NCBI RefSeq assembly: GCF_006345805.1
Contig: NC_043007.1
Span: forward strand, 31,744,001-31,808,000
Direction of reading: 5' to 3'
Source: Octopus sinensis
Lineage: Eukaryota
Length of the DNA stretch: 64,000 bases
A program made the position numbers and the translations under genes. How positions within the stretch are numbered: position 1 is the stretch's first letter; each line of letters opens with the position of its first letter. Positions 26,002 through 59,516 of this stretch are shown piece by piece. Under the pieces are notes generated by a model. It did not search any database and was not told the DNA's origin. It saw nothing but the letters and a program-made list of their open reading frames with translations.

Positions 26002-26148
26002 ATGACAACGACGATAATCTTCCTGTTTTTATCTGTTGTTGCGACTGAGAAAATCCCAATACCATACAACATAATTAGAGACTTTAAAGGAATTGTACCA
26101 GTGAAGATATTTACGGCAAACGAACTCAAAGACTATGGAGGGGCTGAT
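26002..26148 (+). CDS. NENF: Neudesin exon 1 (signal-peptide-like N-terminus and start of the Cyt-b5-like domain)
   Basis: Encodes MTTTIIFLFLSVVATEKIPIPYNIIRDFKGIVPVKIFTANELKDYGGAD, which matches neudesin PVRLFTEEELARYGGEE. Phase-0 donor GAT|gtgagt. An additional upstream exon is not excluded. Confidence 0.88.
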
Positions 26149-26214
26149 GTGAGTACAAAGTCTTCTGCAATTTTCAATTATACTTGCCATTTATTTAAAA
26201 AAACTGAGCTTAAG

Positions 26215-26445
26215 CAGTGTTTCTCAACTGGAGTCCACATAACCTTTGGTGGTGGGGGTCTTTATAAGATTTGGTCATTGGTTATATTTCTATAGTACAA
26301 AAAATATTTTAATGGGTTTGTTTATATGACTAATAATGGTATTTAATTATGAAAGTACAATAGGATTCTTAAATACCGAATGGTTATGGGGGTGCACCTG
26401 GGAAAAATAGGGATGAAAGGGGTCCATAGGGAAAGAGAACCACTC
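26215..26445. mobile_element. Decayed hAT-type MITE just after NENF exon 1
   Basis: cagtgtttctcaac ... gagaaccact termini, similar to the other hAT MITEs in the window. Confidence 0.5.
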
Positions 26446-26479
26446 TGCTAAATCAACATCATTATCTTCATCATTTAAC

Positions 26480-26790
26480 TCTGTGTGTGTGTGTCTGCAT
26501 GTGTGTGTGTTTGTGTCTGCGTGTCTGTCTATGTATGCATGTGTGCGTGTGTCTGTGTTTGTGTGTGTGTCTGCATGTATGTGTCTGTGTGTCTGTCTAT
26601 GTATGCATGTGTGTGTGTGTATTTGTGTGTGTGTTTGTGTCTGCATGTGTATGTCTGAGTGTCTGTCTATGTGTGCGTGTGTGTGTTTTGTGTGTGCGTG
26701 TGTGTTTGTGTCTGTGTTTGTGTGTGTGTCTGCATGTGTGTGTTTGAGTGTCTGTCTATGTATGCATGTATGTGTGTGTGTGTGTGTGCG
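26480..26790. repeat. Degenerate (TG)n/(TGTC)n microsatellite
   Basis: Read directly from the sequence. Confidence 0.93.
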
Positions 26791-27537
26791 CTTGTCCCCG
26801 CCTCCCACTTCCCACTGCTTGACAACCAGTGTTGGTTTGTTTATGTCCTGATATCTTAGTAGTCCATCAAGAGAGACTGATGGAATAAGTACCTTCGTGG
26901 TGGTGCTCCAGCATGGCCACAGCTAAATAACTGAAACAAAAAAATGATAAAAGATGAAAATAAATGAAGAAGAAAGACATGACATGTTTCCATGGTTATA
27001 TTTCAGATTATCCTGTTAAATGGAATTTCTAAACAGATTTCACTTGTTTGCTTGTTTAACATCTGTTTTTCCATGCTGGCATGGGTTAGATGGAGATGTC
27101 TGAGGCAGGAGTTTACTGCTGAATGCTCTTCTTTCCATCAATCATTACCTGTTTCCCTTTGTAAGTCTTCTTTTATGTCACAAGGTCTTCGAAAGCACAA
27201 AGCAACCCAACATATTGTTACAAAAATAATGGAAACATTGTTATTGTCTCTCTCAAGCAAAGCTGAAGGATGTCAACACACACACACACACACGTATCTT
27301 TGAATTTTTCCTGCCCAGGTGAGGAACATATAAGCCATGAACTGGGAAACCGGCCCCTATGTGTTGGCATGACTAGAGAAGAAAACTCTAGCTTCCCCTT
27401 TTTTAAGGTTACTCATCTGTACCAGCTGAGGGGACTGGAGCAATGTGAAATGAAGTGTTTGGCTCAATAACACAATTCATCGCCCGGTCCAGGAATTGAA
27501 ACCACAATCTTGTGACTGTGAGTGCAACACTCTAGAT

Positions 27538-30001
27538 CAGTGGTTCCCAACCTTTTCACTACCAAAGACTCATCATCATCGTTTAATGTCCGTTTTCCGC
27601 ACTGGCACAGGTTGGACCGTTCGACCGGGGTCTGGGAAGCCAGGAGGCTGTACCAGGCTCCAGTCTGATCTGGCAGTGTTTCTACAGCTGGATGCCCTTC
27701 CTAACGCCAACCACTCCACGAGTGTAGTGGGTGCTTTTTACGTGCCACCGGCACAGGTGTCAGGGGAGTCTGGCATCGGCCATGATCGGTTGGTGCTTTT
27801 AACGTGCCACCGGCACGGAAGCCAGTCAAGGCGGCGCTGGCATCGTCCACGTTCGGATGATGCTTTTTATGTGCCACCGGCACAGAAGCCAGTCGAGGTG
27901 GCGCTGGCATCGGCCACGTTTGGATGGTGCTTTTTATGTGCCATCGGCACAGGTGTCACAACTACTATTTCCATTGATATTTATTTCGATGCTCATGTAC
28001 TTGACTCAACAGGTCTCCTCAAGCACAGCGGGATGTTCTGGAGTCCAAGGTACTTTGAATGGGCAGGGGCTATGCGGGACTGGTGCAGGAAGCAGCCCGG
28101 GTCTTTACAGTCACAGCATATCTCCAGAGATCTCGGTCCTTCATCATTGCCTCCGTGAGGCCCAACGCTCTGAGATCATGCTTGACTACCTCATCCCATG
28201 TCTTCCTGGGTCTACCTCTCCCCCTGATTCCTTCAACTGTTTGGGAGCAGCACTTCTTCACACATCTCTCCTCATCCATCCGCAGTACATAACCATACCA
28301 TCGCAAGCATTGCTCTTGCACACCACATCTGATGCTTCTTATGTCCAGCATTTCTCTCAGGGTGCTTACCCTCTGTCGTGCGCGCACACTGACATTACAC
28401 ATCCAGCGGATCATGCTAGCTTAATTTTTTTCAAGTCTACGCATGTCCTCTGCAGTCACCGCCCATGTTTCACTACCGTGAAGCATGGCAGTTCGCACAC
28501 ATGCATCATACAATCTACCTTTCACTCTGAGTGAGAGACCCTTTGTCGCCAGTAGGGGTAGGAGCTTTCTAAACTTTGCCCAGGCTATTCGTATTCTTGT
28601 GGTGACACTCTCTGAGCATCCACCTACACTACTAACTTGGTCACCCAGGTAGCGGAAACTATCAACTACTTCTAGTTTCTCCCCCTGGAGTGTGATGGAA
28701 TCTGTTTTCTGAGTATCTGTGGTGTCTATTGTCGCTGTGCATCTGCCGCACATGAAAGCTATCTTATCAGTTAATTTCCCTTTGATGTTGCTGCACCTCT
28801 TATGCGTCCATAGCTTACACTGGGTACATCTAATGGAGTTTCTACCTACACCTTTCCTACAGATCGAGCAGGGCCACCTGCCCGAGGGGGTGTGTGCTGA
28901 GTTTGCCTTTCTGCTTACTATAACTTTGGTCTTTGCTACATTTACTCTAAGGCCCTTTGATTCTAACCCTTGCTTCCACACCCGAAATTTCTTTTCTAGT
29001 TCCGGTAGTGATTCTGCTATGAGAGCCAGGTTATCAGCATAGAGGAGCTCCCAGGGGCAACCTGTTTTGAATTCCTCTGTTATTGCCTGGAGGACTATGA
29101 TGAATAAAAGGGGACTGAGGGCTGAGCCTTGGTGTACACCTACTTCTACCCGGAATTCTTCACTATATTCGTTGCCAATTCTAACCTTGCTGACAGCCTC
29201 TCTGTATAGGGCCTGTACAGCCCTTATTAGCCATTCGTCAATCTCCAGTTTCCGCATCGACCACCAGATAAGGGATCGAGGGACCCTGTCAAAGGCTTTC
29301 TCCAAGTCCACAAAAGCTATGTAGAGGGGTTTATCTTTAGCTAGGTGCTTCTGCAGTTGTCGGACCAGGAATATAGCATCAGTGGTGCTTCTACCTGGTA
29401 CAAAACCGAACTACATCTCATCTAAGCAAATTCTCTCCCTAATGAGATGGGTTATGACCCTCTCTGAGACCTTCATCACCTGATCCAACAGTTTAATACC
29501 CCTGTAGTTATTTCTATCTAGAGCATCACCCTTACCCTTGTAGCAGTTGACTATGGTGCTGCTACGCCAGTCATTGGGTATGACTCCATTATGAACTACC
29601 TGGTTTACAATGCGGGTGACTAGGTCATAGCCCACATAACCAGCTGTTTTAAGCATTTCAGCTGAGATTCCTGATGGGCCGGGGGCTTTACCTGGTTTCA
29701 TACCCTTAATTGCCTTAACTACAAGGGAGCTGTCTATTCGGATAGCTGGTCCCTCTACTGGGTCAACATTTGGCAGGCTCTCCTCCTCCCATTCATTCTC
29801 CACATTCAGCAGTCTTTCATAATGGCTTCTCCAAGCCTCTTTCTTTTCACCACTTTTATTTAAATGAGTTTTGCCACAGACCCCAGGATATTGAAAGGTC
29901 CGTCAGCTTAACATGTTCATGGATCCCCAGTATTACCTTTTGTGACCAGTAGGGATCCACAGACCACCAGGGGTCTGCAGACAACAGGTTGAGAACCACT
30001 G
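27538..30001. mobile_element. hAT-type MITE interrupted by the RTE LINE
   Basis: TIRs CAGTGGTTCCCAACC and GGTTGAGAACCACTG. The flanking 8-mers ctctagat and ctctaggt match at 7/8, consistent with a TSD. Confidence 0.7.
27571..29850 (-). mobile_element. 5'-truncated, degenerate RTE-clade LINE (RT domain and 3' UTR)
   Basis: Broken ORFs 29411-29803, 28421-29311 and 28070-28414 contain DLEKAFDRVP, GVHQGSALSP, LLYADN and RGRGRPRKTW. The 3' UTR has tandem GGTGCTTTTTACGTGCCACCGGCAC units and a (GAT)n tail. Confidence 0.92.
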
Positions 30002-30770
30002 CTCTAGGTACTTGGCTGCATGTCTTTTGCGTTTGAAGAATTAAATTTGTTCCAGAAATTAGTTTTTCATATGTAACTCAATGAATTTCTTGTGTATTGA
30101 AAAAATGTATTCCAACATGCTACTGCAGGCAGTGGTGGTGGCGGCGGTGGTGGAGGTGGTGGCGGGCGTGGTAGTAGTGGTGGTGGTGGCAGTGGTGGTG
30201 GTGGTGGTTCTGATACGTGAAATCCAGCTCGGTTCCCCCCCGGTTTAAAATATGTGACAGAAAGGAATTTGCTCTCCGACATGACTGAATCACATGTCAA
30301 AAAAGTGATGGCATCACAAGAAAGAAGTGCCAAGTTAATTCCAGACACATAAGAACTGAATCAAAAAGAAAAAGGGGGGAGAAAACAAAACAGCCGACAG
30401 CAAAATTGGTCGAAACACTGCCATGAACCAATGTCATACAACCAGGAACAAGATGAATATTGAACTTTGATAAACACATTTAATAAAACAATATAAATTC
30501 CTACATAAGGGAGTGCTATCGAACTATCTTTTGAAGTAAACAGCAATTCAGGGTGTAAGGCTTTTATACAAAAACACGATCCATAATAAACTGATTTCAT
30601 TTAACCCTTTTGATGCCAAACAACCTCCTAAGCCGCCCCCGGTTCTATGACACAGACATCATGGTTTCAGATATATATTTCTTATGTGGTTTTGTATTGC
30701 TTATGTATCATATACATACAGGTTATATTCCAGATACACGCGTCAGTTTTTTCTAAATTTAAATAAAATA

Positions 30771-31165
30771 TATAGGCGCAGGAGTGGCTGTGTGGTAAGA
30801 AGCTTGCTTACCAACCACATGATTCCGGGTTCATTCCCACTGCATGGCATCTTGGGCAAGTGTCTTCTACTATAGCCTCGGGCCGACCAAAGCCTTGTGA
30901 GAGGATTTGGTAAGTGGAAACTGAAAGAAGCCCGTCGTATATATGTATATATATATATATGTATGTGTGTGTCTGTGTTTGTCCCACCAACATCGCTTGA
31001 CAACCGATGGTGGTGCGTTTACGTCTGCATAACTTAGCGGTTTGGCAAAAGAGACCGATAGAATAAGTATTAGGCTTCAAAAGAATAAGTCCTGGGGTCG
31101 ATTTATTTGACTAAAAGCGGTGCTCCAGCATGACCGCAGACAAATGACTGAAACAAGTAAAAGAG
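30771..31165 (+). mobile_element. SINE family A, full length, in NENF intron 1
   Basis: ataggcgcaggagtggctgtgtgg ... tgactgaaacaagtaaaagag. Confidence 0.9.
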
Positions 31166-31371
31166 AATATATATATATAAAATTACTGGATAATCCTAGA
31201 TCCCGGATTTCTGGCTTTGCATTTAGCAATGCTTTGCTAGTTTCATCTTGTCTCTTCGTTTTCTCTTCGTGTTTTTAGAGTCAGATCATGACTGCTATTT
31301 TCAGCATGGTGGTATCTCATAGATACCCTAATTTATAATTTTATATATATATATATATTATATATACAATG

Positions 31372-31512
31372 TGCTTCTTTCCATTTCCATCTATGAAATC
31401 CACTCACAAGGCTTTGGTCAACCCAAGGCTTTGATAAAAGACACTTGCCCAAGGTGCCACACAGTGGGACTGAACCTGGAACCATGTGGTTGGGGTGCGA
31501 CCTTCTTAGCAC
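31372..31512 (-). mobile_element. SINE family A head half, inverted relative to 30771-31165
   Basis: ccactcacaaggctttggtcaacccaaggc ... ggactgaacctggaaccatgtggttgg. Confidence 0.8.
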
Positions 31513-31589
31513 ATATCTACATTTATACAAGTAATATCGTTATTATTTATGTCAGTAAACTGTATTTGACAAATTCCACCTTATTCCAG

Positions 31590-31650
31590 CCCACCAAACC
31601 CATTTATTTGGCCTTAAAAGGAGTCGTCTTTGATGTATCCACTCGCAGAG
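31590..31650 (+). CDS. NENF: Neudesin exon 2
   Basis: Acceptor ttattccag|, then PTKPIYLALKGVVFDVSTRR+G, then donor |gtaag. Matches the MAPR/neudesin motif PIYLAVKGVVFDVT. Phases 0 to 1. Confidence 0.93.
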
Positions 31651-32430
31651 GTAAGAATTTGATAGAAATAACATTTTCTTTCGTGGCAGGTTGGGATAAT
31701 CACAACTGAGTTGGACGAAATGTGTGGCTATATTTTCTCTTGGCACTACATTCTCTGAGTCAAAATCCCTCCTAGGTCATCTTTACCTTATCATCCTCAT
31801 CATCATCATCATCATTGCCATTATCATCATTTAACATTCATTTTCCATGCTGGCATAGATAGGACAGTTTGGCAGCATTCGATGAACCAGCGGGCTGTAT
31901 TAAGCTCCAGTGTCTGCTTTGGGAATGGTTTCTACAGCTGGGTGCCCTTCCTGACACCAACCACTTTACAAAGTGTACTGGGTACTTTTTTCATGCCACC
32001 AGCACTAGTGAGGTCACCAAAAAGATTTGCAAGACAGGAAAAGAACAATAGAAATCCCCAATCAATTGAGTGGGGTAGAGGAGTATTTAGGAAGGGTAGG
32101 TGGCTTTATGCCTAAGTGTTGGGAGCCTAAAATACAGTAGAAAGACAAGTGCAGATGTCTTGCTATAGAGGAGACACATTCTATAAGGATGGGAGAGAGT
32201 AACTAGGAAGAAGAAAGATAGTAATAATGGGGAGTTTGTAGCCAGCACTCCCTCCAATTATCAAATCTTGAATGGTCTCACACTAAAAGGAGGGAAGGGC
32301 CCTCAGGACTAAATAAAGCCCTATGGTGGCATGAGTCATCCTATATGAGCGTCCAATAACACTATACTTGTTCCATGTCCTCGTGTTGTTGTGTTTTCTC
32401 TTTGTTCGTGTTTGGATTAACTATATATAT

Positions 32431-32476
<46 letters not shown>

Positions 32477-32477
32477 G

Positions 32478-32526
<49 letters not shown>

Positions 32527-33276
32527 CATAGTTGGAATTTACCAAAAAAATCAAAACAAAAGAGGAAGACGTGTGTGTAAACAACAAACAGAGGTATTAG
32601 TTTAACGCTCAGGAAGTGAGAAAGTCTTTTACGTTTCAAGCCAACGCTCTTCAACAGAAAGGAACACAAAAATAAGCAGAGAAAGAAAATAAAATAAATA
32701 TATATTAATGTGTGTATGTGATCAACGTAGATAAAAGGCCGATATAGTTATACCCGGAAAGCTTTTGATCCTGAATTCACTTGAGAACTAAACAACAACA
32801 CAGTTGTCTTGAGGTCCCCCCCCAATCACCTTTTCCTGCCTAAAACTCATATACGTCTGCTAGCATCATCCATATCTTATTTAAGCTCTTCTTCCACAAC
32901 TTAACCCACAAAAAAAAAAAAAAATCCCCATTCGATTATCTTTTGTCTTGCCTACAACATAAAGAGTGAGTGACTCACTTTTAATCTCTGACCGTTTGTC
33001 TTAGGTACAATCTAGGAACTTTACAGATGATAAATAGACCTTGTCAAAATATGTCAAAACGTGTCAACTACATTCATAAAGCATTAAAATATATATTAAT
33101 ATGTTAATACTACATTATCGTATTAAACACAATGACTTCAGGTCATTTACCTTTGTTTTAGCATAAACAGTACCATAATTTAATGTGTGCGCTGAAGCAT
33201 CAGCAGGTTTCATTTGCAGGAAAATATCAGCTTTTAGAATATTCTGTTGAAATTCTCAGGGTTTCTTACAATCCTC

Positions 33277-33665
33277 AAGGCGGTGAGCTGGCAGAGTCCT
33301 TAGCACGCCGGGTGAAATGCTTAGTGGTATTTCGTCCGCCGCTACGTTCTGAGTTCAAATTCCGCCGAGGTCGACTTTGCCTTTCATCCTTTCGGGGTGG
33401 ATAAATTAAGTACCAGTTACACACTGGGGTCGATATAATCGACTTAATCCATTTGTCTGTCCTTGTTTGTCCCCTCTATGTTTAGCCTCTTGTGGATAGT
33501 AAAGAAATAGGTATTTTGTCTGTCTTTACATTCTGAGTTCAAATTCCACCGAGGTTGACTTTGCCTTTCATCCTTTCGGGGTCGATAAATTAAATACCAG
33601 TTATGCACTGGCGTCGATGTAATCGACTTAATCTGTTTGTCTGTCCTTGTTTGTCCCCTCTATGT
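33277..33665 (+). mobile_element. tRNA-derived SINE, family B, with a duplicated B-box module
   Basis: aaggcggtgagctggcagag ... gagttcaaattccgccgaggtcgactttgcc, with the module repeated at about 33530-33660. Confidence 0.85.
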
Positions 33666-34011
33666 TTAGCTCTTTGTGACCAAAAAGTCCATCAGACCTG
33701 GCTGACAGCATTTCTGTCCCTATAGAATTTATCTCAAACAACTTGCAACACCCCACTCTCTGAAAGCACTTCCAGGCCACGGATTTCAGGAAATTATCTG
33801 TAGGTTCTGACCCAAAAGCCCTCTGGAATAGACCAACCTGTTTGATTTTCATTATGCCCCAGAGTTTCCCCAAGAATGCTGTTGTTTGTATTAATCCTTC
33901 ATAGAACTTCCACCTATTACGATGCCCAACTAGTAAAGGACTGTGAACACTTGGCAACAATCTAGATGCCAAATGCTCTGCCCCGGTCTTTGCTTGATTC
34001 AGGACCGTAGC

Positions 34012-34190
34012 TTCCACATCTGTTTGCCGTCAAGCAAGCTGACTTATTTGGTTAGGAAAGATTGCCACGAAATTCACCTCTCTGCACCTGTGGGCCATAT
34101 TTTGACGACCACATCTGCTTGCCGTCAAGCAATTGCTAACTTATTTGGTTAGGAAAGATTGCCACGACATTCGCCTCTCTGCACCTGTTG
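34012..34190. repeat. Two-copy tandem repeat of about 95 bp
   Basis: ccacatctg(t/c)ttgccgtcaagcaa...ctctgcacctgt occurs twice. Confidence 0.85.
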
Positions 34191-34857
34191 TCCCAACTTC
34201 CTCTTTCTGTCTCCATTATCTTCGCCTTCTCTCTTTTCCTGCTCTTTTTTCTTTGTTTTTTTTCTCTTTTTCTTTTCTTTTGTTTTCTTTTTCTTCTCAA
34301 GTGTTGCTTCTTTTTTTTTGTTTTGTTTTGCTTAACATACACCACGTTAAGTGTCGGTTTAGCCTAAATCAAATAATAAGATTTTGTGGGATATAATCCG
34401 ACCAAAGCGAAGAAAAATAATCTTTTGATTTTTATCGCAGTAGTTTCTTTATTCAACACCGTTTCAGCGACTGGATTTGGACAAACGATTTAAGAAATGG
34501 ACGCATCTTAAACAAAACATTTCAAGCGAAGTTTGTCGTCCAGATTTTATCCCCAAAACTGACCTAGTGACGAGGAATTGACAACGCTGCTGATCTTTCA
34601 GTCGTATCACTTGTGAAACATTTGAAACCAAACAGCTGACAAAAAAAACAAACTGTCCTTCTCCCCCAAATTTAAATAAAACTAAAGTTTGTTTATAATA
34701 ACTGACAAAATAAAATAAAAATGAAAGATAGACGAGTACAAACATACTTTAAAATGTGTTTGTAAACAGAACAAATCCGGTACATTTAAACTCTTTTTCA
34801 ATATAAACAGACGACACACATATACACACAAATAGAAGACAACAAAAACCCTAGCTG

Positions 34858-37184: not shown

Positions 37185-37384
37185 ACACATACACACACAC
37201 ACACACATGCACTCACATGCATACAGACACACTGTGTGCATAAATATTTATGCAAATATATACATGCATAGATACGTACATAGACATGCATTCATGCATG
37301 CATGCAAGCATGCATATATAAGTACATACACACATGCATGCATACATACATACATACACACATACATACATACATGCATACATG

Positions 37385-37416
<32 letters not shown>

Positions 37417-37746: not shown

Positions 37747-37781
<35 letters not shown>

Positions 37782-38210: not shown

Positions 38211-38243
<33 letters not shown>

Positions 38244-46517: not shown

Positions 46518-46627
46518 AATTCTACGGAAAGAATGCAGTATATAACCGATTAGTCGGAAGAGATTCTACCAATGCTGTGGCTAAAATGAGCCTCCATGAA
46601 ACAGACGTCAGTAAAGCACACGACATT
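46518..46627 (+). CDS. NENF: Neudesin exon 3 (heme-binding FYG...Y motif)
   Basis: Acceptor tttttctag|, then (E)FYGKNAVYNRLVGRDSTNAVAKMSLHETDVSKAHDI, then donor |gtaagt. Matches [26 protein letters not shown]. Phases 1 to 0. Confidence 0.95.
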
Positions 46628-47189: not shown

Positions 47190-47336
47190 AGTGATTTGAG
47201 TGAAACCCAATTGAAGGATCTGGAAGAGATATTTCACCAAGTTTATTTGGCGAAGTACCCGATCGTTGGATTTATGGATTATTTGCTGTCTGTCGAAGAA
47301 TTTGCCAAACAGATAAAGCCTCAAGATGAGCTGTAA
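47190..47336 (+). CDS. NENF: Neudesin exon 4 (terminal coding exon)
   Basis: Acceptor attttacag|, then SDLSETQLKDLEEIFHQVYLAKYPIVGFMDYLLSVEEFAKQIKPQDEL*. Matches neudesin VYKAKYPIVG. The four exons join to 465 nt, i.e. 154 aa plus stop. Confidence 0.95.
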   Translation, partial: SDLSETQLKDLEEIFHQVYLAKYPIVGFMDYLLSVEEFAKQIKPQDEL

Positions 47337-47366
47337 AAGGAGGTTCCACAAGAATTCTTTTACTCT

Positions 47367-47755
47367 TTTACTTGTCTCAGTCATTTGACTGTGGCCATGC
47401 TGGAGCACTGCCTTTAGTCGAGCAAATCGACCCCAGGACTTATTCTTTGTATGCCTAGTACTTATTCTACCTGTCTCTTTTGCCGAACAGCTAAGTTGCA
47501 GTGATGTAAACACACCAGCATCGATTGTCAAGCGATGTTGGGGGGACAAATACAAACACATAAACACACACACAAATGCATGCACATATATATACATACA
47601 TATATACGACAGGCTTCTTTCAGTTTCCGTCTACCAAATCTACTCACAAGGCTTTGGTCGGCCCGCAGCTATAGTAGGAGACACTTGCCCCAGGTGCCAC
47701 ACAGTGGGAATGAACCCAGAACCATGTGGTTGGTAAGCAAGCTACTTACCACACC
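47367..47755 (-). mobile_element. SINE family A about 30 nt after the NENF stop codon
   Basis: Near full-length family A copy. Confidence 0.88.
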
Positions 47756-48237
47756 TGCACTGAAAGTTTCTTACAATCATTTGTGTCTTAATGTTTAAAT
47801 TCACACCAGATGGAAATATCCAGTTTTAGTTTTGACTCTTGGTATCAGCCATTTTATTTAATCTTGGGATTCTTCCAAAGCAAAAAAAGTTGAGTTTTGT
47901 AATAACAATGATACTGCTTTTGTGTAGTCTTCGATTAAAAGACAGATATATTTTCAACAGTAACAGGGAACAGATTCTGTAGAACGCTGGGCAAAATTGT
48001 TGTGGCATTTACTTGCATTTGAGTTTTGAGTTCAAATCACGCTGGGTTTAACTTTCTCATTCACCCTTCTAAAATCTACAAAACATTTTGTGAATTTGAT
48101 TCAATGAAACAAGCTCACCTAAAAGTTTGTAAGGTCTTCTTGTGGTTTTGTGTCAGTGATAAAAACCAATACTAAATATGTTTAACAGATAATAATTTGA
48201 TAAAAAGAGATAATATGACAGAAGATTAAATGCATTA

Positions 48238-48370
48238 TACGAGGTGTGTCAAAAGTAACAAGACTTACTGTTTAGTAAGCTATGTGTGGGGTAGGAATTA
48301 ACGATATGCGTCATCGTATGACGTAATATCCAGAAAGTAGATAACTGCAGCATCAGCTCTCTGCAGCCAT

Positions 48371-48407
<37 letters not shown>

Positions 48408-48984
48408 ATTATTGGTGAATTGAAGAAATGGAGCTGAACGCAGATTGAACAGAAATCGTTTTATTTCATTCTACACGTGTTTCAAAAGGCACAAATTACC
48501 AAAATCCGATTGAATAATGGGACCATATTGTGTCTTTCTCTTCAGGAAGAAAAAAGGAAATCCGTTGGAAAAACAAAAACAGAACAGAGGCGGAGCAAAA
48601 ACAAATCGAACTAAGCTCCTATGTATTTTTGTTAACAGCTCCTCAGTTTTAGGCCATCAAGCGTTTCTTGGTCACCCTGCATCCAGCAGTTCTTTGCCAG
48701 GAAGAACAGCACTGTGCTGGAGCAACCTCCCTACTCATCCGACTTGGCTCCGTGTGATTTTTTCCCCCTTGGAGACACGTTTTCGTGACGTGGCAGCCAT
48801 CAAGAAGGCCGTGATGACGGAGCTGTGGCAAATTCCTCCAGGAGAGAATGGAGGCATGGCAGAGAAGGATGGTAAAGTACATTAGACGCAAGTGGAGATT
48901 ATTTTGAAAGAGAAATCTTGTAGTTTGGATTTGGCATAAATTTTTGGCGGCCCCAGTCATGTTTCTTTTCTGACACAACTCATA
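48238..48984 (+). mobile_element. Internally deleted mariner transposon
   Basis: Termini TA-cgaggtgtgtcaaaagtaacaagact and agtcatgtttcttttctgacacaactca-TA. Internal decayed PPYSSDLAPCDF motif at about 48728-48765. Confidence 0.8.
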
Positions 48985-50267
48985 CACAATTGGTTTAATT
49001 TTTCGTTCCTCTGAAAATAAATATGAAAGCACGTGGCCTAGGATGTTGCACTCGCGATTACAAGGTAGTGGTTTTTGATTCTCAGACCGAGCAGTGCCTT
49101 GTTTTCTTGAACAAAACACTTTGTGGCTGGCTGGTTGGTTATGTTTGTGAGGCTGCTTGCCGAATAATATTGGGTTGTCCGGAAAGTTTGTGCCGATTTA
49201 TAGTAGCTTACCATTCGACTTATTTTAGAACATGGTTGAGTCCATAAAATAGGATTTGACTACACTTCCATTTAACATTTTGGCAAAAGAGAGCGATAGA
49301 ACAAGCACCAGATGTAAAAAAAAATTACTGGGGTTGTTACATTCAATTAAAAAATTTTCAAGGCAATGCCCCAGCATGGCCACAGTCTAATGACTGAAAT
49401 AAGTAAAAAATAAAAGAATAAAAGAGAAGCAAAGTGGTAAATTTATATATTTTTTTTTATTTCAGTATTTATAATTACATTTTTACAATAAATATAATTA
49501 TACCGTTTGTAGGTATATGTAATAAAGTTAACATTCAATGCGGCATTATTAGGTTGTATTCAATTTCATACAGGCTGTAAATATTTTTAAAAATCCTTTC
49601 CTGTCCCTTGAGATGTCCAGGTAATATTTTTGTTCAATAGTTGTCTCGAATTAAAAACAAACCCCAGTTATTACTGTACGTTAATATGATTTGAATCCAG
49701 AAAAACCTCGCCAATCGAGATTGCGCCAGCGGCGATGATAAAGATAATTTATGCTGATTGTGATAATGAGGAGGAGGAGGTGATGATGAAGAGGAGGAGG
49801 ATATTAACTTTGGATTATCAGTGAAACAATTATGCAAATCTGTGTCAGTTTGAGATAAAATGGAAAATAAGGTGAAGAATGAGAAGCGAAAAGTAAATTA
49901 GTACCATCAACGATTAAAGAATAGTTAGGCCCAGAATCTGAGGAAAATGGTATGGTAGTGTACTGGTAACAATTAATTCAGACGGGAGTTTATAGAAGAG
50001 TTTTAAAGATTTCCAGGCACTTAAGGGCTGCCCAAAAATAATGTTTCGTATCTTTCTCCTTCATCTGAGAATGGGGAAACAAGTGTGCTAGTAAGGTGAT
50101 AACATCTGTTTCTGCTTTCTCACTCCGAGATTCTTCAAAACCAGTTCACAACAACACTCATATACATACACTCGCATAATATCTGTATGTACATATACAC
50201 ACGTATTTCTGTGTGTATATATATACATATATGTACACGCGTATATATTTACACACACACACATACG

Positions 50268-50274
<7 letters not shown>

Positions 50275-50299
<25 letters not shown>

Positions 50300-52520
50300 C
50301 ATACATGCATATATACATACATACATACATAGGTATACATGGCCGCAGTCTAATGACTGAAAAGAGTAAAAGATAAAATATTTACACATATATGTTATAT
50401 ATTGTATATTATACACATACACACACACATACACACATATTTAAATATTACATATATGAAAGGGTGCCGAAAAGGTTCAGATTCACACACTCATTGCATC
50501 TCTCAGATTCACACATTTATTGCAGTGGTCCTTCAGTTTTTCTAAGCCCTGTAAAGGAACTCGGAAGTTTGGGCCTCCAGCCAAATCTTTCGCGATTCCC
50601 TTAAAGCCAGGAAATTCTTAGCAACTCTTCGTATATACACACAGGCATGGCTGTGTGGTTTCAGGTTCAGTCCCACCGTGTGACACCTTAAACAAGTGTC
50701 TTATCTACTGTTACCCTGGGCCAGCAAAAGCTCTGTGAGTAGATTTAGTAGATGGAAACTGAAAGCATTTTGCCATAAATGTGTGTATGTGTGTGTGTTA
50801 CGGCAGAGCGGTTAGATTCAAATATCTACAATAATTCCTTCTTTCAAGATCAACTCCCGGCAGATCTTCCTAATCTTTCTACGCAGACTTAATTTTGCTG
50901 GCTTGTTTCAGTAAACGTACTTCAGACTCTGGACTTTGTTATTCATTGTTATACTTATATATATATATATTTTTTTTTAGGTTTCAGTTTTACTTTTCCT
51001 TTTCTTTTCTTTTTTGCTTTTTTTGTGCTGTTGTTGGTTTGTTGCGATATCGTTTGTTAGGTGAGAAATAACCCTGATAAGACATTACTTCTGATGTCAT
51101 CATGTCCGAATTTATGATAAAATAGGGTGGATTTTTAAGATACATTTTTAAATAATAGTCGAGAACTTTCAGTTCCCATTGCAGTGTAGAAAATTTAATT
51201 TTAATCTCATGGTTAGATATGTACAGTTCAATATATTCATATAAATGTATATATATATATATAAATATGGAAAAAAAAATTGCCGTTAAATGTACGAAAA
51301 AATACATATATGTATGTATGTGAGTATGAGTGTGTGTATGTGCATATATATAAATACACACACACACATATACACATATCTATCTATGTATAATATATAT
51401 ATATATATATACATACATACATGCATATATACATACATACATACATAGGTATACATGGCCGCAGTCTAATGACTGAAAAGAGTAAAAGATAAAATATTTA
51501 CACATATATGTTATATATTGTATATTATACACATACACACACACATACACACATATTTAAATATTACATATATGAAAGGGTGCCGAAAAGGTTCAGATTC
51601 ACACACTCATTGCATCTCTCAGATTCACACATTTATTGCAGTGGTCCTTCAGTTTTTCTAAGCCCTGTAAAGGAACTCGGAAGTTTGGGCCTCCAGCCAA
51701 ATCTTTCGCGATTCCCTTAAAGCCAGGAAATTCTTAGCAACTCTTCGTATATACACACAGGCATGGCTGTGTGGTTTCAGGTTCAGTCCCACCGTGTGAC
51801 ACCTTAACAAGTGTCTTATCTACTGTTACCCTGGGCCAGCAAAAGCTCTGTGAGTAGATTTAGTAGATGGAAACTGAAAGCATTTTGCCATAAATGTGTG
51901 TATGTGTGTGTGTTACGGCAGAGCGGTTAGATTCAAATATCTACAATAATTCCTTCTTTCAAGATCAACTCCCGGCAGATCTTCCTAATCTTTCTACGCA
52001 GACTTAATTTTGCTGGCTTGTTTCAGTAAACGTACTTCAGACTCTGGACTTTGTTATTCATTGTTATACTTATATATATATATTTTTTTTTAGGTTTCAG
52101 TTTTACTTTTCCTTTTCTTTTCTTTTTTGCTTTTTTTGTGCTGTTGTTGGTTTGTTGCGATATCGTTTGTTAGGTGAGAAATAACCCTGATAAGACATTA
52201 CTTCTGATGTCATCATGTCCGAATTTATGATAAAATAGGGTGGATTTTTAAGATACATTTTTAAATAATAGTCGAGAACTTTCAGTTCCCATTGCAGTGT
52301 AGAAAATTTAATTTTAATCTCATGGTTAGATATGTACAGTTCAATATATTCATATAAATGTATATATATATATATAAATATGAAAAAAAAAATTGCCGTT
52401 AAATGTACGAAAAAATACATATATGTATGTATGTGAGTATGAGTGTGTGTATGTGCATATATATAAATACACACACACACATATACACATATCTATCTAT
52501 GTATAATATATATATATATA
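50275..52520. repeat. Near-identical tandem duplication of about 1.1 kb
   Basis: The two units are offset by about 1116 bp; for example, the ORF at 50392 is identical to the ORF at 51508. Confidence 0.95.
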
Positions 52521-52524
52521 TAAC

Positions 52525-52810
52525 AATTGCAGCGTGGGAGGTGTTTAGAAGCCATTTAAGAAACACACAAAACCGTTAGATTCACTTCAACATTTAAATT
52601 TAATTTGTCAAATTATTTTCGTCGCTTTGAGACCGCGACCTTTTCACTGACAAAGCTTCGTGCTGCATGACAAATTAAATTTAAATGTTGAAGTGAATCT
52701 AACGGTTTTTGTGTGTTTCTTAAATGTTTATAAACACCTTCCACGCTGCAATTATTTTCGTTCCAGCACACGACCTCAGATCAAGTCACTTGCTATGCAA
52801 GTACATCTCT
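52525..52810. mobile_element. Repeat with an inverted terminal duplication of about 86 bp (Penelope-like arrangement)
   Basis: Arms 52525-52610 and 52668-52753. The same family occurs uninverted at 25050-25270. Confidence 0.6.
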
Positions 52811-53157
52811 GTAATATATATATATATATATATTAATGACAATGTATTGTATAATACATCCATTATGGCCGATCTTACCGATTCATTTTGTACTGACCAT
52901 TAAATCGGATGTTAGATAACACCATGGTTAATTAATACTGCTCGTTTGTCAGGGGCTGGTAGGTATGGCGAACCTGCTATCTCTGACAAGCACGCGGTAT
53001 TACTTGAACGTGGTTTTATCTAACTTCTGGTTTAACACTCGGTGCAGGGCTGACTGGTAAGACCAGTCGTAATATACACTCTGATTAATATACACGCTTT
53101 GCTGAGAAATATATGAGGGCGTATTGCTCCACCCACACGCATAGATTCTTAGTTGGA

Positions 53158-53179
53158 CTATATATATATACATACATGC

Positions 53180-53226
<47 letters not shown>

Positions 53227-53381
53227 CATACATACATCCATATATATATACACACATATATATATACATACATACATACATACATACATACATACATGTA
53301 TATATATATATATACATTCATACATATATATATATGTATATATATATAGATATATATACATATATACATACATATGTATAT

Positions 53382-53412
<31 letters not shown>

Positions 53413-53590
53413 TGTATATATATATAAATATACATAATATATATATATATACATACACACGTGTGTGTATGTGTATGTGTGAATGTGCATGTGTTTGCGT
53501 GTATGTATAGACATGGACGTTATACGTACAACAGTATACAAGTGTTTGTGTATGTGCTTGTGTGCGTGTATGTGTGTGTGTGTGTGTGGT
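53158..53590. repeat. Compound (TA)n/(TACA)n/(TG)n microsatellite
   Basis: Read directly from the sequence. Confidence 0.93.
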
Positions 53591-53796
53591 TCAAAATTGT
53601 ACAAAAACAAAAAACAGAAAACGGGGACAGGTCAGGGAACAACAATCAAAGTGTATTAGTTAGAAGCTCAGTAAAAATGGATGAGTTCTCGACATTTCGA
53701 GCTTATGCTCGTCTACAAAATAAAAATGCCGAAAAAAAAATAACACAGAGAGCCGCAAAAAAAATCAGAGAAAAAAATATGTCTTGAGTAATGTTT

Positions 53797-53835
<39 letters not shown>

Positions 53836-54980
53836 TTGTGTGTGTACATATATATCTATATATATATACACATACACATATATGTGCATGTATGTGTGTG
53901 TCAAAAGTTATGAAAGTGTTCCAGTTTCAAATCAAAATAACAAAAATTACTAAAAGAAAATAAAAAAAAATATAAAGGATTTGAGTCCTTTGTGATCTTT
54001 TTGGCCGACGCTGTTTAAAAATAAACATACGTATTTTCAGATATATATTTATATATATGCACGCATGCATATACATTCATACTTTTAGAATTTCATCATT
54101 ATAACACTGATTTCTAAACATAAGGGCGAAGCCACAAATTTTTAATAAGGGTCCAGTCGATTGCATTTATCCCAGTACTTAACAGACCCTTTATTTCATT
54201 TACCCAAGAAAGATTAAAGACAAGATCAACACGGGTAGGATTTGAACTCAGAATGTAAAGAACCGCAACAGAATACCACAAGTCGTTCTCTGTTGGATGT
54301 TCCAGTGGCTCTGTGAACCCATCGACCCCACCCACACTATCACCACCACATACATTTATAAACTCACCAATATGTATTTATATATATATATATATATATA
54401 TAGGGAGAGTTTATGAAAAAAACAACAAAAGATGAAGACAGGTGGTGTACAAAACAAACAGATGTATTAGTATAACGCTCAGGAATAGAAAAGGTATTTT
54501 ACGTTTCGAGCCTACGCTCTTCTACAGAAAGGGACACAGAAAAAACAAAGAGAAAAAAATGTGTGTAGTGGCTAACGATCTATCATGGCGACTGACCATG
54601 TATGTATGTATGAATATGTATTTATGTATGTATTATGCATGCATGTGTGTGTATATATATATATATATACACACAGGATTATGCTTAAATTTTTTCCTCA
54701 TTCCTGTGAGTATATTCTTCAACGTAGATTAATACCAATATATTCCATAAATCGGTACATTGCTATAAACATTTACTCATAGAGTTATTTCCATTGTGGA
54801 GCACTGACTCTTGTAGATATATATTTGGTGGCACCACTTACACTTGTACAGATCTTTAACGGTGCCATTACCACCAATAACGGCACTTGGTGGTTGGTAC
54901 ATCCAACCCGTCCACCCTTATTTCCTAAGTTTCATTTCTTTTTTGTACTCATAGAAATGTTCATCATCATCATTATTATT

Positions 54981-55037
<57 letters not shown>

Positions 55038-55493
55038 GAGTGAGAGAGCAGTGCATGCCATCAAAGTGACACTGGGGTAAAATATACGAAGCCCAGTACA
55101 CCCATCATGACTACCCGTCTGATAAGGGTACACTAGGCACATGCATCACAACCATATGTGCGTGACATGGTGATCTCATATCAAGATAAACAGCACATGA
55201 CCTTGCAGGTGGGGGCCCAGTTAGAATTTTCTTCTGGTCGAGTAGCCCATCCCACTCAAGAGGTCCCTGAATAAGGGTTGTTTAAGGATGTTGAACGAAA
55301 CACCCATGTTTCCAGAGGTGAATTATTCAAACCCCAAAGAATTGTTCTCAACGCATGGCTATGATGCTCCCCCACTACTTCTGCTCATGATCAGAGATGC
55401 ACATATCGTCAGCCACTAAGGGACGTGCTCAACTGGTTAAGGTCAAACAACTGACAAGCAAATCTGTGGTATTGAGCAGAATATTTGCTGTAA

Positions 55494-55494
<1 letters not shown>

Positions 55495-55544
<50 letters not shown>

Positions 55545-55670
55545 CATCATCATTGTTATTATCATCACTATTATTATTATTATCATTATTATTATTAATT
55601 ATTAAAAATAAACGAGAATTTTTTATTATTATTATTATATTATTATTATTATTATTATCATTATTATTCT
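55495..55670. repeat. (ATT)n microsatellite; another lies at 54962-55040
   Basis: Read directly from the sequence. Confidence 0.93.
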
Positions 55671-55689
55671 TCCTTCATAACATAGTGTA

Positions 55690-55870
55690 TGTAAAAATTC
55701 ACCGGAGTCTTTGGTCACCTGCCGAGTCACAACAAGGACCTCAGACAGATAATGCTTTCCTTAAGATGAGCCCAATGAGGCTGCTTTTTGCAAGATATCA
55801 GTCTTACATGGGATTTCCAGTTGCCTTAAGGAGTTTTGAAGTTTCAATGGGATTGAGCCCAATGCTCATT
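55690..55870 (-). mobile_element. R4/Dong-like non-LTR element 3' end adjoining (TAA)n
   Basis: The minus strand reads ILQKAASLGSS, resembling the LQKAALLGTAHILRKVL terminus of this clade. It abuts a long ATT/TAA microsatellite. Confidence 0.5.
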
Positions 55871-56399
55871 ATTTGACCGTGTTTTATGTAAAAAAATTTG
55901 ATCGTTATTGTGGTTCTTGAAACTATAATTATTGGATTAATCTTTTTCCTCGAAGAGTAAAAGAGAAACAAAAGGGAACGTAATTTACAAAGAAGAAAAA
56001 GAACGACTATTGTAGCAATTAGTTTTTAGTAATTTGTCGTTGTAATTAATGTAGGTGGTCTTTAAAGGGAAATGACAGAAATCATTAATAATATAATATA
56101 TAGGCATTTTTTTTTTAGAGAAAATGTTTTTTGTTACTTTGTTCTTTATGCTCGCTGCCCCCTACTATCACCACCACAACATGACCACCAAATTCTAATC
56201 CGAATTCATTAGCATCAAACAGCCAAGCTTCAGTGATGGTACCAGTATTTGTCAGGCTTTTCCGACTAGTGTTAGTTATAAATATATACAAATTGAGATC
56301 ATTGCTTCCATCAGCACAGTCCAAAAACCATTTTGCTTTGTAGAGTTTCGGCACAATTGAAAGAAAAAGGGAGAAAGAAGCGAAGAGAGGATGTCAGTT

Positions 56400-56555
56400 T
56401 TATGTACACGGGTAGGAAGCGTTTTCTCCCCAGTTTAAGGTCGGATAATACGTTGAGTAGTTCTGTACTAATAAACGCAGCTGGTTGTTCTCCTTCTGTA
56501 ACTGACTGATTAACCGTTCGTAGTTCTCCTTCTCTTTGAGCATATATCTCTGGTT
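56400..56555 (-). CDS. bZIP transcription factor leucine-zipper terminal exon
   Basis: Acceptor tttattccag|, then NQRYMLKEKENYERLISQLQKENNQLRLLVQNYSTYYPTLNWGENASYPCT*. Heptad register L-M-Y-L-L continues from the basic exon. Confidence 0.88.
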   Translation of the reverse strand, partial: NQRYMLKEKENYERLISQLQKENNQLRLLVQNYSTYYPTLNWGENASYPCT

Positions 56556-57291
56556 CTGGAATAAATAAATAAATAAATAAGTAAATTGATAATTGGACAG
56601 ACAGCCAATCAGAAAGGTAGGCAGGTAAGTAGGTAGATAGGTAGGTAGCTAGCCAGCTAGACAGATAGATAGACAAGTAGACATAGCAATATAGATAGAT
56701 AGATAGACAGATAGATAGATCCATATATAGATAGTACTAGAAATCCCATATCTTTAAGAATCTAGTCACACTATTTAACCTAGTTAAACCCAATGATGAC
56801 GCTGTATACCAGTAACCCAAATACACTGATGTGTGTGTGTGTACACGGTTGTCGAACGAGTACCAACACTTCCATGTAGCACGCTTAAACAATTGTGAAT
56901 ATCACTTCACATGAAACCATTGGTTGCCTTGTTAACCAACAAATAAAAAAACGTATATATATATATTCTTTTCTACTCTTGGCACAAGGCCTGAAATTTT
57001 GGGGGGAGGGGGCCGGTCAATTAGATCGACCCCAGCATGCAACTGGTACTTAATTTATTGACTCCGAAAGGATGAAAGGCAAAGTCGACCTCAGCGGAAT
57101 TTGGACTCAGAACGTAAAGACAGATGAAATACCTATTTCTTTTTTTCTTCCAAGGTCTGGAGTCTCCCACCCCTAAGCCCTTTGACCATCACCTAATCAC
57201 CCTTACCCGTCTTGTTGCTTAACAACAACAACAACAGCAGCGAAATGCAACACCAACACCACCAGCCCCAGAATTATTGATTAAAACTTAC

Positions 57292-57399
57292 ATCTTCCAA
57301 TTCTTCCATTTTGTTCTTCTTCCTCAGACGGCATCTCTGTGCCGCTTTCCTGTTTTGCTCTCTCCTCCTCAAAATTCTCGTCTCTTCTTCTGGCCGTAG
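57292..57399 (-). CDS. bZIP transcription factor basic-region exon (ATF3/BATF/Fos-like)
   Basis: Acceptor gtttctgttgcag|, then LRPEEETRILRRREQNRKAAQRCRLRKKNKMEELED, then donor |gtaagt. 108 nt, phase 0-0, with the canonical N-x7-R bZIP basic motif. Confidence 0.92.
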
Positions 57400-59223
57400 C
57401 TGCAACAGAAACAAGAATTAAATAACTTCTGCTCACCTCATCAGTACGACTGAAAGATGGTCTGCGAAATAACCACAACTGAAGTTGCAGTTACTTTAGC
57501 AGGGAAGGAATTAAATTCTTTTCTACTCTAGGCACAAGGCCCGAAATTTGGGGGGAGGAGGCCAGTCGAGTACATCGACCCCAGTACGCAACTGTTACTT
57601 AATTTATCGACTCCGAAAGGATGAAAGGCAAAGTCGGCCTCGGCGGAATTTGAACTCAGAACGTAAAGACAGACGAAATACCTATTTCTTTACTACCCAC
57701 AAGGGGCTAAACACATAGGGGACAAACAAGGACAGACAAACGGATTAAGCTGATTACATCGACCCCAGTGTGTAACTGGTACTTAATTTATCAAAGGGCC
57801 AACTATGTCACATTGAATCTCCCTAAGAACTACATCAAGGGTTCGCGTGTCAGTGGAGCGCTAAGCCACTTGCACGTTAATCTCACCAGCAGGTTTGTTC
57901 CATTACTAGGTTCAACTGGAACCCTCGTCGTCACAACCGACGGAGTGCCAATTAGCAAACATAAATTAGGGTTTTTGATAATTAACACTCAGATTCAAAT
58001 GGAACCTGAATTTCACTCCCTGAAGAAGAGCATTCATATGAAAGTTGACCTCTTACATTCGGCCTTGAAAAATGGTTCGAAAAATTTGACTCCTACTTGG
58101 TAAATTATTTTAAGGTTGTTCTTATTACTAAACAAAGTGGAAACATGTTTTGGCAAACAAATGAAATCACACCCCAATGAACGTCAGATAACTGGCGTTG
58201 AAAGCAACGCTACATAGATTTTTTTCTTTAATGAGATCAAAGAAACTTTGTAACAAGCAAATCTAGTCGACACAGGAGCCTTGGTGTAGATGCTCGAAAT
58301 AGCAGCCAAATCTCCCTCAAATCACACACTGTTGGCATGGGAAAGGGAAAACTACATTAGATAACATAGTGTTGAAGCGATGGGATGGTCATAGCAGGAA
58401 TGCTTTTCAACACAGGTCATCTGATCTTCTCAATTAGGCTTGCGCCGGAGTTCATCAATAACAACAATGACAGCAATAATCAAGTGTACGTTGGAAACAA
58501 ATTCTTGTATGATGATGATGATGAGGAGGAGGATTATTATGATGATGATGACGATGATGATATTATTTTAACTTATTTATTTATTTACTAAAATGACAAT
58601 TACAAGAATATAAATACATGTATAACATATTATGCTTTGCATATAAAATATATAAAGATACCAGTAATTATTATTAAAATGTTTTATATGTAAAGCATAA
58701 TGTTATACGTGTATGTATATTCTTGTAATTCTCATTTTAGTAAATAAATTGACATAATATAATGTCTAAAAGTTGATGAACCAACTATTGATCCCCTCCA
58801 TTTTCTTATTGCTATATATATATATGTATATATATATAATATATATATATGTATGTATGTATGTATGCATGCATGTATGTATGTAGGTATGTATGTGTGT
58901 GTATATATATATATATATATCTATATGTATATATGCATGAATATGTTCGTGTGTGTATGTGTGCGCGCGCGCACCCATCACCACTTGATAACTAGTGTCG
59001 GTGTGTTTAGGTCCCAGTAACTTAGCGGGTGGTCAAAAAGAGACTGACAGAATAAGTATCAGACATGAAAAAAAGAAAACAAACAAAAAAACCCTAAATA
59101 CTACAACCGATTATTTCAACTAAAAACCTAATAAGGCGATGCCCTAGCATGGCCGCAGCCCTACAACAGAAACATGCAAGAGATAAATGATAATTAACGA
59201 AATAAGAAATGTTTTCTAATTAC

Positions 59224-59516
59224 CTCGTATTGTATGGGAGGTTTCACTTCTGTATCGACAGCATTCTTTCCTTCCTGGAACCTCTTGTACAATATCTGGC
59301 ATTTCAGTTCCTGTTTTATGATGTGAATCATGTCTCCCGTCTCGTTGACTTTCTCAACGGCTTCCTTCAGTTGAGAATCTTTTTCGTTATCGCTGACATT
59401 ATCATAGGAGTCATTTTCTGGACAAACGTCACCTTTCATAGGTTCTGGTGTCTCCACAAACGGATAGTTCTTCAAATCTTGGCAGAAATCAAGATTAGTC
59501 ATCTCGCCAAAAGACT
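59224..59516 (-). CDS. bZIP transcription factor, internal exon encoding an acidic N-terminal region
   Basis: Open frame SFGEMTNLDFCQDLKNYPF...VKPPIQYE. Acceptor tttctttcattcttaaag| and phase-0 donor GAG|gtaatt, compatible with the next exon. The acceptor position is less certain than the donor. Confidence 0.7.

Follow-up and report, generated by a model that had tools for sequence, protein, structure and literature searches.

Adjacent NENF and ATF3-family genes in Octopus: a probably independent pairing within an ancient linkage group

In the genome of Octopus sinensis, the gene for neudesin (NENF) and a gene for a basic leucine zipper (bZIP) protein of the ATF3/JDP2 group are immediate neighbors, an arrangement that resembles human 1q32.3, where the gene order, PACC1-NENF-ATF3-BATF3, places NENF and ATF3 in tandem about 0.1 Mb apart. 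The question raised by this locus is whether the pairing is a relic of a neighborhood older than the protostome-deuterostome split, as proposed in an earlier note on this DNA (hereafter, the original prediction), or a local product of genome rearrangement. Had the ancient origin held, the locus would be a rare bilaterian microsynteny that survived the scrambling of coleoid genomes, hinting that an immediate-early transcription factor is co-regulated with a neurotrophic factor. We analyzed a stretch of 64,000 nucleotides (hereafter, the window) from O. sinensis chromosome CM016869.1, with position 1 corresponding to approximately 31,744,001 of that record, together with the corresponding loci of other animals. 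We consider it likely that the pairing is local and confined to the genus Octopus, and that its resemblance to the human order is a coincidence within an old linkage group.

The pair in Octopus and its neighborhood in other animals

NENF, on the forward strand (26002-47336), and the bZIP gene, on the reverse strand (59516-56400), are convergent and lie tail to tail, with the following coding exons and intervening gap:

26002-26148, forward strand: NENF exon 1, with the start codon, a signal-peptide-like N-terminus and the beginning of the cytochrome b5-like domain
31590-31650, forward strand: NENF exon 2, PTKPIYLALKGVVFDVSTRR
46518-46627, forward strand: NENF exon 3
47190-47336, forward strand: NENF exon 4, with the stop codon TAA at 47334-47336 and the protein end ...KPQDEL
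47337-56399: stop-to-stop gap of 9,063 bp
56555-56400, reverse strand: last exon of the bZIP gene, with the leucine zipper and the stop codon TAA at 56402-56400
57399-57292, reverse strand: basic-region exon of the bZIP gene, 36 codons, phase 0, LRPEEETRILRRREQNRKAAQRCRLRKKNKMEELED
59516-59224, reverse strand: N-terminal coding exon of the bZIP gene, with the ATG at 59502 and a KEELK-type motif, DMIHIIKQELKCQILYKRF

The annotated O. sinensis locus, fetched via the NENF protein, is identical to positions 16002-57336 of the window, and no genes are called in it between 47337 and 56399; the longest open reading frames (ORFs) of this interval have no significant Pfam match, and an Rfam search of the whole window returned nothing. 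The gene models and the annotation thus bear out the convergent arrangement, the distance of about 9 kb between the stop codons and the lack of a detected gene in between, all of which had been read from the sequence in the original prediction. Position 59516, taken there as the outer limit of the pair, is the first base past the splice acceptor of the first bZIP exon within the window. As both genes had already been annotated, the finding as such is ordinary.

The gap itself is made up of repeats and microsatellites, along with two nearly identical tandem copies of a segment of about 1.1 kb:

~50277-51390: first copy, ~1.1 kb
~51393-52500: second copy, ~1.1 kb

The two copies are 100% identical across the stretches of 286-300 nt that were compared, with a spacing of 1113-1116 bp. 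The duplication is either very recent or else an assembly artefact. None of the unique non-coding sequence of the gap is conserved in the intergenic region of the corresponding locus of Argonauta.

The NENF loci of six other species were fetched with 10-kb flanks and have the following neighbors:

Chiton, Liolophura: upstream ARP2; downstream NRDE-2
Amphioxus: upstream ARP2; downstream a 3beta-HSD-like gene
Abalone, H. rufescens: upstream ARP2; downstream nothing
Annelid, Owenia: upstream nothing; downstream a gene of 901 aa
Sea urchin: upstream ARP2; downstream a gene of 333 aa
Medaka: upstream TMEM206/PACC1; downstream an ERM-family gene

A six-frame scan detected no bZIP basic region within 10 kb of NENF in any of the five invertebrate loci, and there is no bZIP among the genes called in the medaka locus. 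The downstream flanks of the six species and the window show no mutual similarity and have no common neighbor. Hence the adjacency of NENF and ATF3, for which gastropods, annelids, amphioxus and sea urchin had been named among the places to look, is, within 10 kb, absent from abalone, Owenia, amphioxus and sea urchin, and from the chiton as well.

The pairing is also missing in another octopod, the closest relative that could be compared. At the Argonauta hians locus (10001-21863), the bZIP orthologue is convergent not with NENF but with CCDC167, the gene located upstream of NENF in Octopus; the two are 6.7 kb apart, and no NENF exon was found between them even at a permissive threshold. Argonauta is likewise absent from the homologue matches to octopus NENF; this gene may have been lost or relocated in that lineage. 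The order CCDC167-NENF-bZIP is seen in O. sinensis and is implied for O. vulgaris, where the corresponding proteins (P0006 and P0003) are encoded on one contig. The survival of an ancestral microsynteny through the rearrangement of coleoid genomes, as originally envisaged, does not agree with the absence of the pairing from Argonauta and five other invertebrates.

The same observations bear on the possibility that the pairing arose anew in cephalopods or octopods as a regulatory block maintained by selection, in which the two genes would share enhancers or a topological domain. Coleoid-specific microsyntenies exist, and many of them are reported to have appeared after the genome reorganization (PMC9023564); furthermore, the order CCDC167-NENF-bZIP is apparently common to O. 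sinensis and O. vulgaris. Nevertheless, the Argonauta site lacks NENF, no NENF exon is found within 10 kb of the Sepia orthologue of the bZIP gene, the gap holds repeats and a tandem duplication of apparently recent origin instead of unique conserved non-coding sequence, and neither NENF, nor neudesin, nor ATF3 is mentioned in the portion consulted of the Schmidbaur et al. 2022 supplementary text (PMC9023564). We therefore regard such a block as unlikely, though conceivable within the genus Octopus. There is no sign of the shared regulation of the two genes that the original prediction suggested: the convergent orientation precludes a shared promoter, and there is the lack of unique non-coding conservation with Argonauta described above.

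Two adjacencies different from that of NENF and ATF3 are shared across phyla. In sea urchin, amphioxus, chiton and abalone, ARP2, an Actin-family gene (394-396 aa) with a sequence recognizable as ACTR2, is located head-to-head with NENF, with the gene starts 198-353 bp apart, at the following locus coordinates:

Chiton: 1874-12608
Amphioxus: 1135-13340
Abalone: 1-15750
Sea urchin: 1-14987

This appears to be a bidirectional pair of truly ancient origin; our literature search found no paper that mentions it. The pair is absent from the Owenia and medaka NENF loci within the 10-kb flanks, TMEM206/PACC1 being head-to-head with NENF in medaka, and searches of the octopus window with the amphioxus and chiton peptides found no ARP2 exons. 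The second adjacency involves the bZIP genes themselves. The tandem order in amphioxus (locus 1-24222) is Fos, ATF3-like, a third bZIP gene encoding 162 aa, and ATG14, and in Owenia (locus 6753-15041), Fos, ATF3-like, and eIF5. A tandem cluster of Fos followed by ATF3 looks ancient and mirrors the vertebrate FOS-JDP2-BATF array. The third amphioxus bZIP gene combines a KEELK-like motif (PRVKDELRATIRARQ) with an exon of 36 codons, and, judging by these sequence features, BATF may descend from a motif-bearing ATF3-like gene. Tandem bZIP genes in amphioxus, Owenia and abalone are comparable to the vertebrate FOS-JDP2-BATF and ATF3-BATF3 clusters, and the octopus gene comes from the same family; by contrast, the octopus and Argonauta genes are alone in the sequence available, with no Fos in the 4.5 kb upstream that the octopus window provides and no bZIP within 10 kb upstream of the Argonauta gene. 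The ARP2-NENF pair, the Fos-ATF3 tandem and the molluscan KEELK family discussed below are perhaps more interesting to synteny specialists than the octopus pairing.

Chromosome-scale linkage and the origin of the pairing

Even though the two genes are not adjacent in these animals, wherever both could be located, O. sinensis included, they are found on one record, at widely different distances:

Amphioxus, B. floridae, CM022886.1: NENF at 12.29 Mb, ATF3-like at 13.39 Mb, 1.09 Mb apart
Annelid, O. fusiformis, CAIIXF020000008.1: NENF at 2.96 Mb, ATF3-like at 26.01 Mb, 23 Mb apart
Abalone, H. rufescens, JALGQA010000003.1: NENF at 53.98 Mb, ATF3-like at 2.11 Mb, 52 Mb apart

In H. asinina, NENF and the ATF3-like gene are on contigs equal in size. 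The species compared have roughly 12-19 chromosome pairs, and the chance of a shared chromosome in the three invertebrates together, calculated from these counts, is about 1 in 4,000. The sharing of a chromosome in three phyla beyond Octopus and mammals is unlikely to occur by chance; NENF and the ATF3 cluster are therefore members of the same ancient linkage group, as this term is reportedly used by Simakov et al. 2022. The proposal that the linkage predates the protostome-deuterostome split accordingly holds at the scale of the chromosome, but not for tight adjacency, given that the distance in these three species ranges from 1.1 to 52 Mb.

The arrangement in Octopus is similar to human 1q32.3 in that an ATF3-family gene directly adjoins an NENF orthologue, with no protein-coding gene in between. 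It differs in orientation and distance (convergent and 9 kb in Octopus, tandem and about 0.1 Mb in human), in the upstream neighbor of NENF, which is CCDC167 rather than PACC1, in that no BATF-like gene is seen, and in that the arrangement is absent from the intermediate lineages tested. As for other mammals, a table from a genome-wide association study in pig places NENF, ATF3, BATF3 and PACC1 in one locus (PMC12937405), in agreement with the human neighborhood on which the original prediction was built; apart from this gene list, we found no prior treatment of NENF and ATF3 synteny in the literature.

If NENF and ATF3 had been neighbors in the bilaterian ancestor, with the adjacency retained in Octopus and mammals and lost elsewhere, this would account for the shared chromosome wherever both genes were located, for the presence of NENF, ATF3 and BATF3 in one mammalian locus, and for the distance of just 1.09 Mb in amphioxus. 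This scenario, however, entails six or more independent losses, namely, in amphioxus, sea urchin, the annelid, the chiton, abalone and Argonauta and, apparently, in medaka. Four of these lineages still have the tight ARP2-NENF pair and, because this pair is kept, the NENF neighborhood in them is conservative. The difference in orientation described above also argues against common ancestry of the two arrangements, and in amphioxus and Owenia the ATF3-like gene is flanked by Fos and by ATG14 or eIF5, not by NENF. We therefore consider an ancestral adjacency very unlikely. The more elaborate version, in which the octopus locus is a remnant of a bilaterian neighborhood, with ARP2-NENF near a Fos-ATF3-BATF cluster as at the 1.1 Mb of amphioxus, that was kept tight in Octopus and mammals alone by a shared long-range regulatory constraint and dispersed at least 6 times elsewhere, is in our assessment likewise very unlikely.

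Under the reading that we prefer, the two functionally unrelated genes would have ended up tail-to-tail in Octopus, most likely by a rearrangement within the chromosome. Because gene order drifts within a shared chromosome, genes of an old linkage group could come together repeatedly, and the closeness of NENF and ATF3 would have arisen independently in Octopus and in mammals. Such coincidences should not be rare: as a rough estimate, if a linkage group contains about 1,000 genes in random order, a neighbor match between species is expected with a frequency of about 0.2-0.4%, so that a set of roughly 10,000 orthologues or more would yield tens of coincidental pairs. By this rough inference, two species with common linkage groups would show dozens of coincident pairs genome-wide by chance alone, which is one more point against an ancestral adjacency. 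Given that tight adjacency is known only in Octopus and mammals, with different orientations and different flanking genes, independent juxtaposition is the parsimonious reading, and the resemblance to human 1q32.3 is probably coincidental. A caution of some generality follows: genes of one ancestral linkage group can become neighbors independently, and therefore a match between two species is no evidence of conserved microsynteny.

Several points weigh against this reading of the locus. The amphioxus distance of 1.1 Mb amounts to about 3% of the chromosome, and a loose ancestral proximity of NENF and ATF3 in chordates is accordingly conceivable. If Argonauta has lost NENF, the order CCDC167-NENF-bZIP might predate the genus Octopus. 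The Sepia pharaonis bZIP locus, in a much larger genome, has no gene called within 10 kb downstream and is thus uninformative in this respect. Flanks of 10 kb would miss a bZIP gene located 10-100 kb from NENF in the chiton or sea urchin; positions of ATF3-like genes come from three species, and the set of NENF loci excludes Nautilus, squid, bivalves and cnidarians. Finally, molluscs have several ATF3-like paralogues, which in abalone are tandemly arranged, and the octopus gene need not be a one-to-one orthologue of vertebrate ATF3.

Identity of the two genes

The octopus NENF gene has four coding exons separated by GT-AG introns throughout, and its product of 154 aa is identical to the NCBI protein 'neudesin-like [Octopus sinensis]' (P0005). 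The product matches the Pfam domain Cyt-b5 with 37 bits (cut-off 23.7) and named neudesins of amphioxus, sea urchin, fish and sharks with E = 1e-27 to 1e-32; identity to the neudesins of amphioxus and of several fish and sharks is 43-50% over at least 95% of the query. The Cyt-b5-like haem/steroid-binding domain, the signal-peptide-like N-terminus (judged by eye), the length of about 155 aa and the four coding exons are all typical of neudesin, a member of the MAPR family. A difference lies in the C-terminus. Human NENF ends in KDEF, whereas the octopus protein has a KDEL-like ending, QDEL (in the 47319-47336 region), and other invertebrate orthologues likewise end in xxEL or xxDL: HDEL in amphioxus, EKEL in the chiton, NGEL in Owenia and KEDL in abalone. 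These endings hint that the proteins are retained in the endoplasmic reticulum and not simply secreted. A fragment of a retroelement is inserted in intron 1 of the gene:

28070-29803, reverse strand: ORFs with RVT_1 (E = 8e-18) and a PHD-like zinc finger

The bZIP gene has three exons within the window, with all introns GT-AG and in phase 0. Its product is the NCBI protein 'cyclic AMP-dependent transcription factor ATF-3-like' [Octopus sinensis] (P0001) minus 10 N-terminal residues; the annotated first exon that encodes these residues (MYNSK...) was searched for in the window and is not present there, and hence must lie beyond position 64000. The Pfam matches are bZIP_1 (31.2 bits, cut-off 27.6) and bZIP_Maf (26.7 bits, cut-off 22).

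By the bZIP domain itself, assignment of this protein to a family is impossible. Single-sequence phmmer comparison gave 27.6 bits for ATF3, 27.3 for FOSL2, 26.5 for NRF2 and 25.4 for BATF3. A hidden Markov model (HMM) of the cephalopod bZIP region alone scored BACH1 at 35.5, an amphioxus Fos-like protein at 35.4, ATF3-like at 32.1, FOS at 32.0, JUNB at 32.0 and BATF at 31.0 bits, that is, BACH1, Fos, Jun, BATF and ATF3 all fell within 5 bits. In a neighbor-joining tree (64 ungapped columns, no bootstrap), the cephalopod proteins are placed among molluscan ATF3-like proteins, with the Jun, CNC and CREB outgroups nested inside. The human bZIP references in these comparisons (ATF3, BATF, Jun, CNC and others) were entered by hand and not drawn from a database; of these, ATF3 was compared with database ATF3 proteins and is close to them. 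Because neither the tree nor the bZIP-only HMM discriminates among the families, we judged the assignment from the N-terminal motif, its spacing from the basic region and the exon structure.

All three lines of evidence point in the same direction. An exhaustive profile search with the Octopus and Argonauta proteins as the query collected 290 relatives. Screening of 149 sequences, namely, the two queries and 147 listed matches, revealed a KEELK-type motif in 99, where it precedes the basic-region Asn by 44-52 aa, most commonly by 46 aa; the motif of the relatives has the form (S/T)LTPLIKEELKxxIQSRRL, of which the octopus copy, DMIHIIKQELKCQILYKRF, is a degenerate version, and the copy in named vertebrate ATF3 is LTPLVKEELRFAIQSKRL. 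The spacing is 46 aa in Octopus, Argonauta, Sepia, Owenia and Glandiceps, 51 aa in the amphioxus ATF3-like protein and 53-57 aa in database vertebrate ATF3. The top scores of an HMM of the cephalopod N-terminal region all belong to ATF3-like proteins (Owenia 28.5, amphioxus 14.8, Glandiceps 14.7 and Ptychodera 9.5 bits), followed by ATF3 of Latimeria (9.2), gar (7.2) and Dendrobates (5.8). The majority of the other references, Fos, Jun and CNC included, reach at most 3.4 bits (NRF2, 1.2). The human ATF3 (2.7) and JDP2 (0.8) references, entered by hand, are in this background range and below human BATF (3.4). With the full-length cephalopod HMM, ATF3-like proteins score 72.5, 56.1 and 50.5 bits, compared to 34.4 or less for the rest, and with the family profile, vertebrate ATF3 (E ~1e-27) is separated from Fos (~1e-13) by 13-14 orders of magnitude. 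As to gene structure, a phase-0 basic-region exon of 36 codons (AG/108 nt/GT) occupies the same position in the genes of octopus, Argonauta and Sepia and in the ATF3-like genes of Owenia and abalone; in amphioxus, it is found both in the ATF3-like gene and in the small neighboring bZIP gene, whereas the Fos genes of amphioxus and Owenia lack an intron at the basic-region/zipper junction.

By motif, spacing and exon structure, the octopus protein can thus be identified as a divergent, fast-evolving member of the ATF3/JDP2 family. The original designation as ATF3/BATF-like is borne out in this narrower form, the protein falling in the ATF3/JDP2 group and hence not outside the Fos/ATF3/BATF clade. 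Were the protein instead of the BATF, Fos or CNC type, or an orphan, the comparison with human ATF3 would not apply. The non-discriminating bZIP domain and the unresolved tree leave room for this, and the best match of solved structure is NRF2 (E = 2e-4), whereas the basic region, RRREQNRKAAQRCR, is as BATF-like as it is ATF3-like. Yet it is specifically with ATF3-like genes that the octopus gene shares its N-terminal motif, the spacing of this motif and the exon structure, and the full-length and family profiles put ATF3-like proteins far above all others, so that we deem this alternative extremely unlikely.

Two specific affiliations were tried and rejected. The alignment with the NRF2 structure spans the motif region, which could suggest a relationship to CNC proteins (NFE2/NRF), characterized by a CNC domain directly before the basic region, but neither the scores of the N-terminal HMM nor the structure of the gene agree with it. 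The BATF family consists of minimal, bZIP-only proteins that lack a conserved N-terminal domain, whereas the octopus protein has about 100 residues before the bZIP domain, including the ATF3-type motif; the human BATF reference, entered by hand, scores 31.0 bits with the bZIP part and 30.6 with the full-length HMM, and BATF3, 30.5 and 31.8, respectively.

Compared to vertebrate ATF3/JDP2, which are stress-inducible factors of the AP-1 type, the octopus protein is similarly small (180-190 aa), has an LTPxVKEELKxxIQxxRL-type motif upstream of the basic region and a PEEE acidic stretch just before it, and is encoded with the same phase-0 exon of 36 codons and the intron at the basic-region/zipper junction, features shown here for amphioxus, Owenia and abalone. 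Exon C of vertebrate ATF3 is also 108 bp long. The differences are substantial as well. The octopus basic region is RRREQNRKAAQRCRLRKK, without the canonical RRERNKxAAAKCRNKK, as opposed to RRRERNKIAAAKCRNKKK in the vertebrate proteins; the motif is degenerate and closer to the Asn (46 aa compared to 53-57); and the zipper is short and atypical, with L-M-Y-L-L at the heptad positions, that is, with Met and Tyr among them, and with the end ...LLVQNYSTYYPTLN, lacking the H-R-P-x-C motif (HRPTC in vertebrates). Many molluscan members of the family are also divergent in the basic region, and most retain an HxxxC ending.

The KEELK-defined ATF3-like family of molluscs is large and fast-evolving, with proteins of about 130 to 790 aa, one of which (P0080) has two bZIP units. 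The automatic names of its members are inconsistent and include ATF-3-like, c-Fos-like, JunB-like and BATF-like.

Other features of the window

Two families of short interspersed repeats have many copies in the window and are present in the Argonauta locus as well, at 70-85% identity. Examples of the copies are:

2707-2860, 9070-9240, 19594-20030 and 27570-27720
4507-4595, 8337-8426, 15674-15767, 30845-30935 and 47609-47703

Upstream of NENF and on the same strand, the last two coding exons of CCDC167 were located by tblastn with the CCDC167 part of an O. vulgaris protein model (P0006) as the query; these are the only exons of the gene located in the window:

16989-17048, forward strand: CCDC167, next-to-last coding exon, translation RLSFLDCQDRLRKQIKKH
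~18990-19097, forward strand: CCDC167, last coding exon, translation EKELTALQYENIKSMVLAAIFFGILCIIYAIIHIR, followed by the stop codon at 19095-19097

The end of the gene at 19097 is 6.9 kb upstream of NENF. These exons are uncalled in the O. sinensis annotation and were overlooked in the original prediction. The query model itself, P0006 of O. vulgaris (184 aa), combines CCDC-167 with Cyt-b5 and is apparently two separate gene models, CCDC167 and NENF, joined by mistake.

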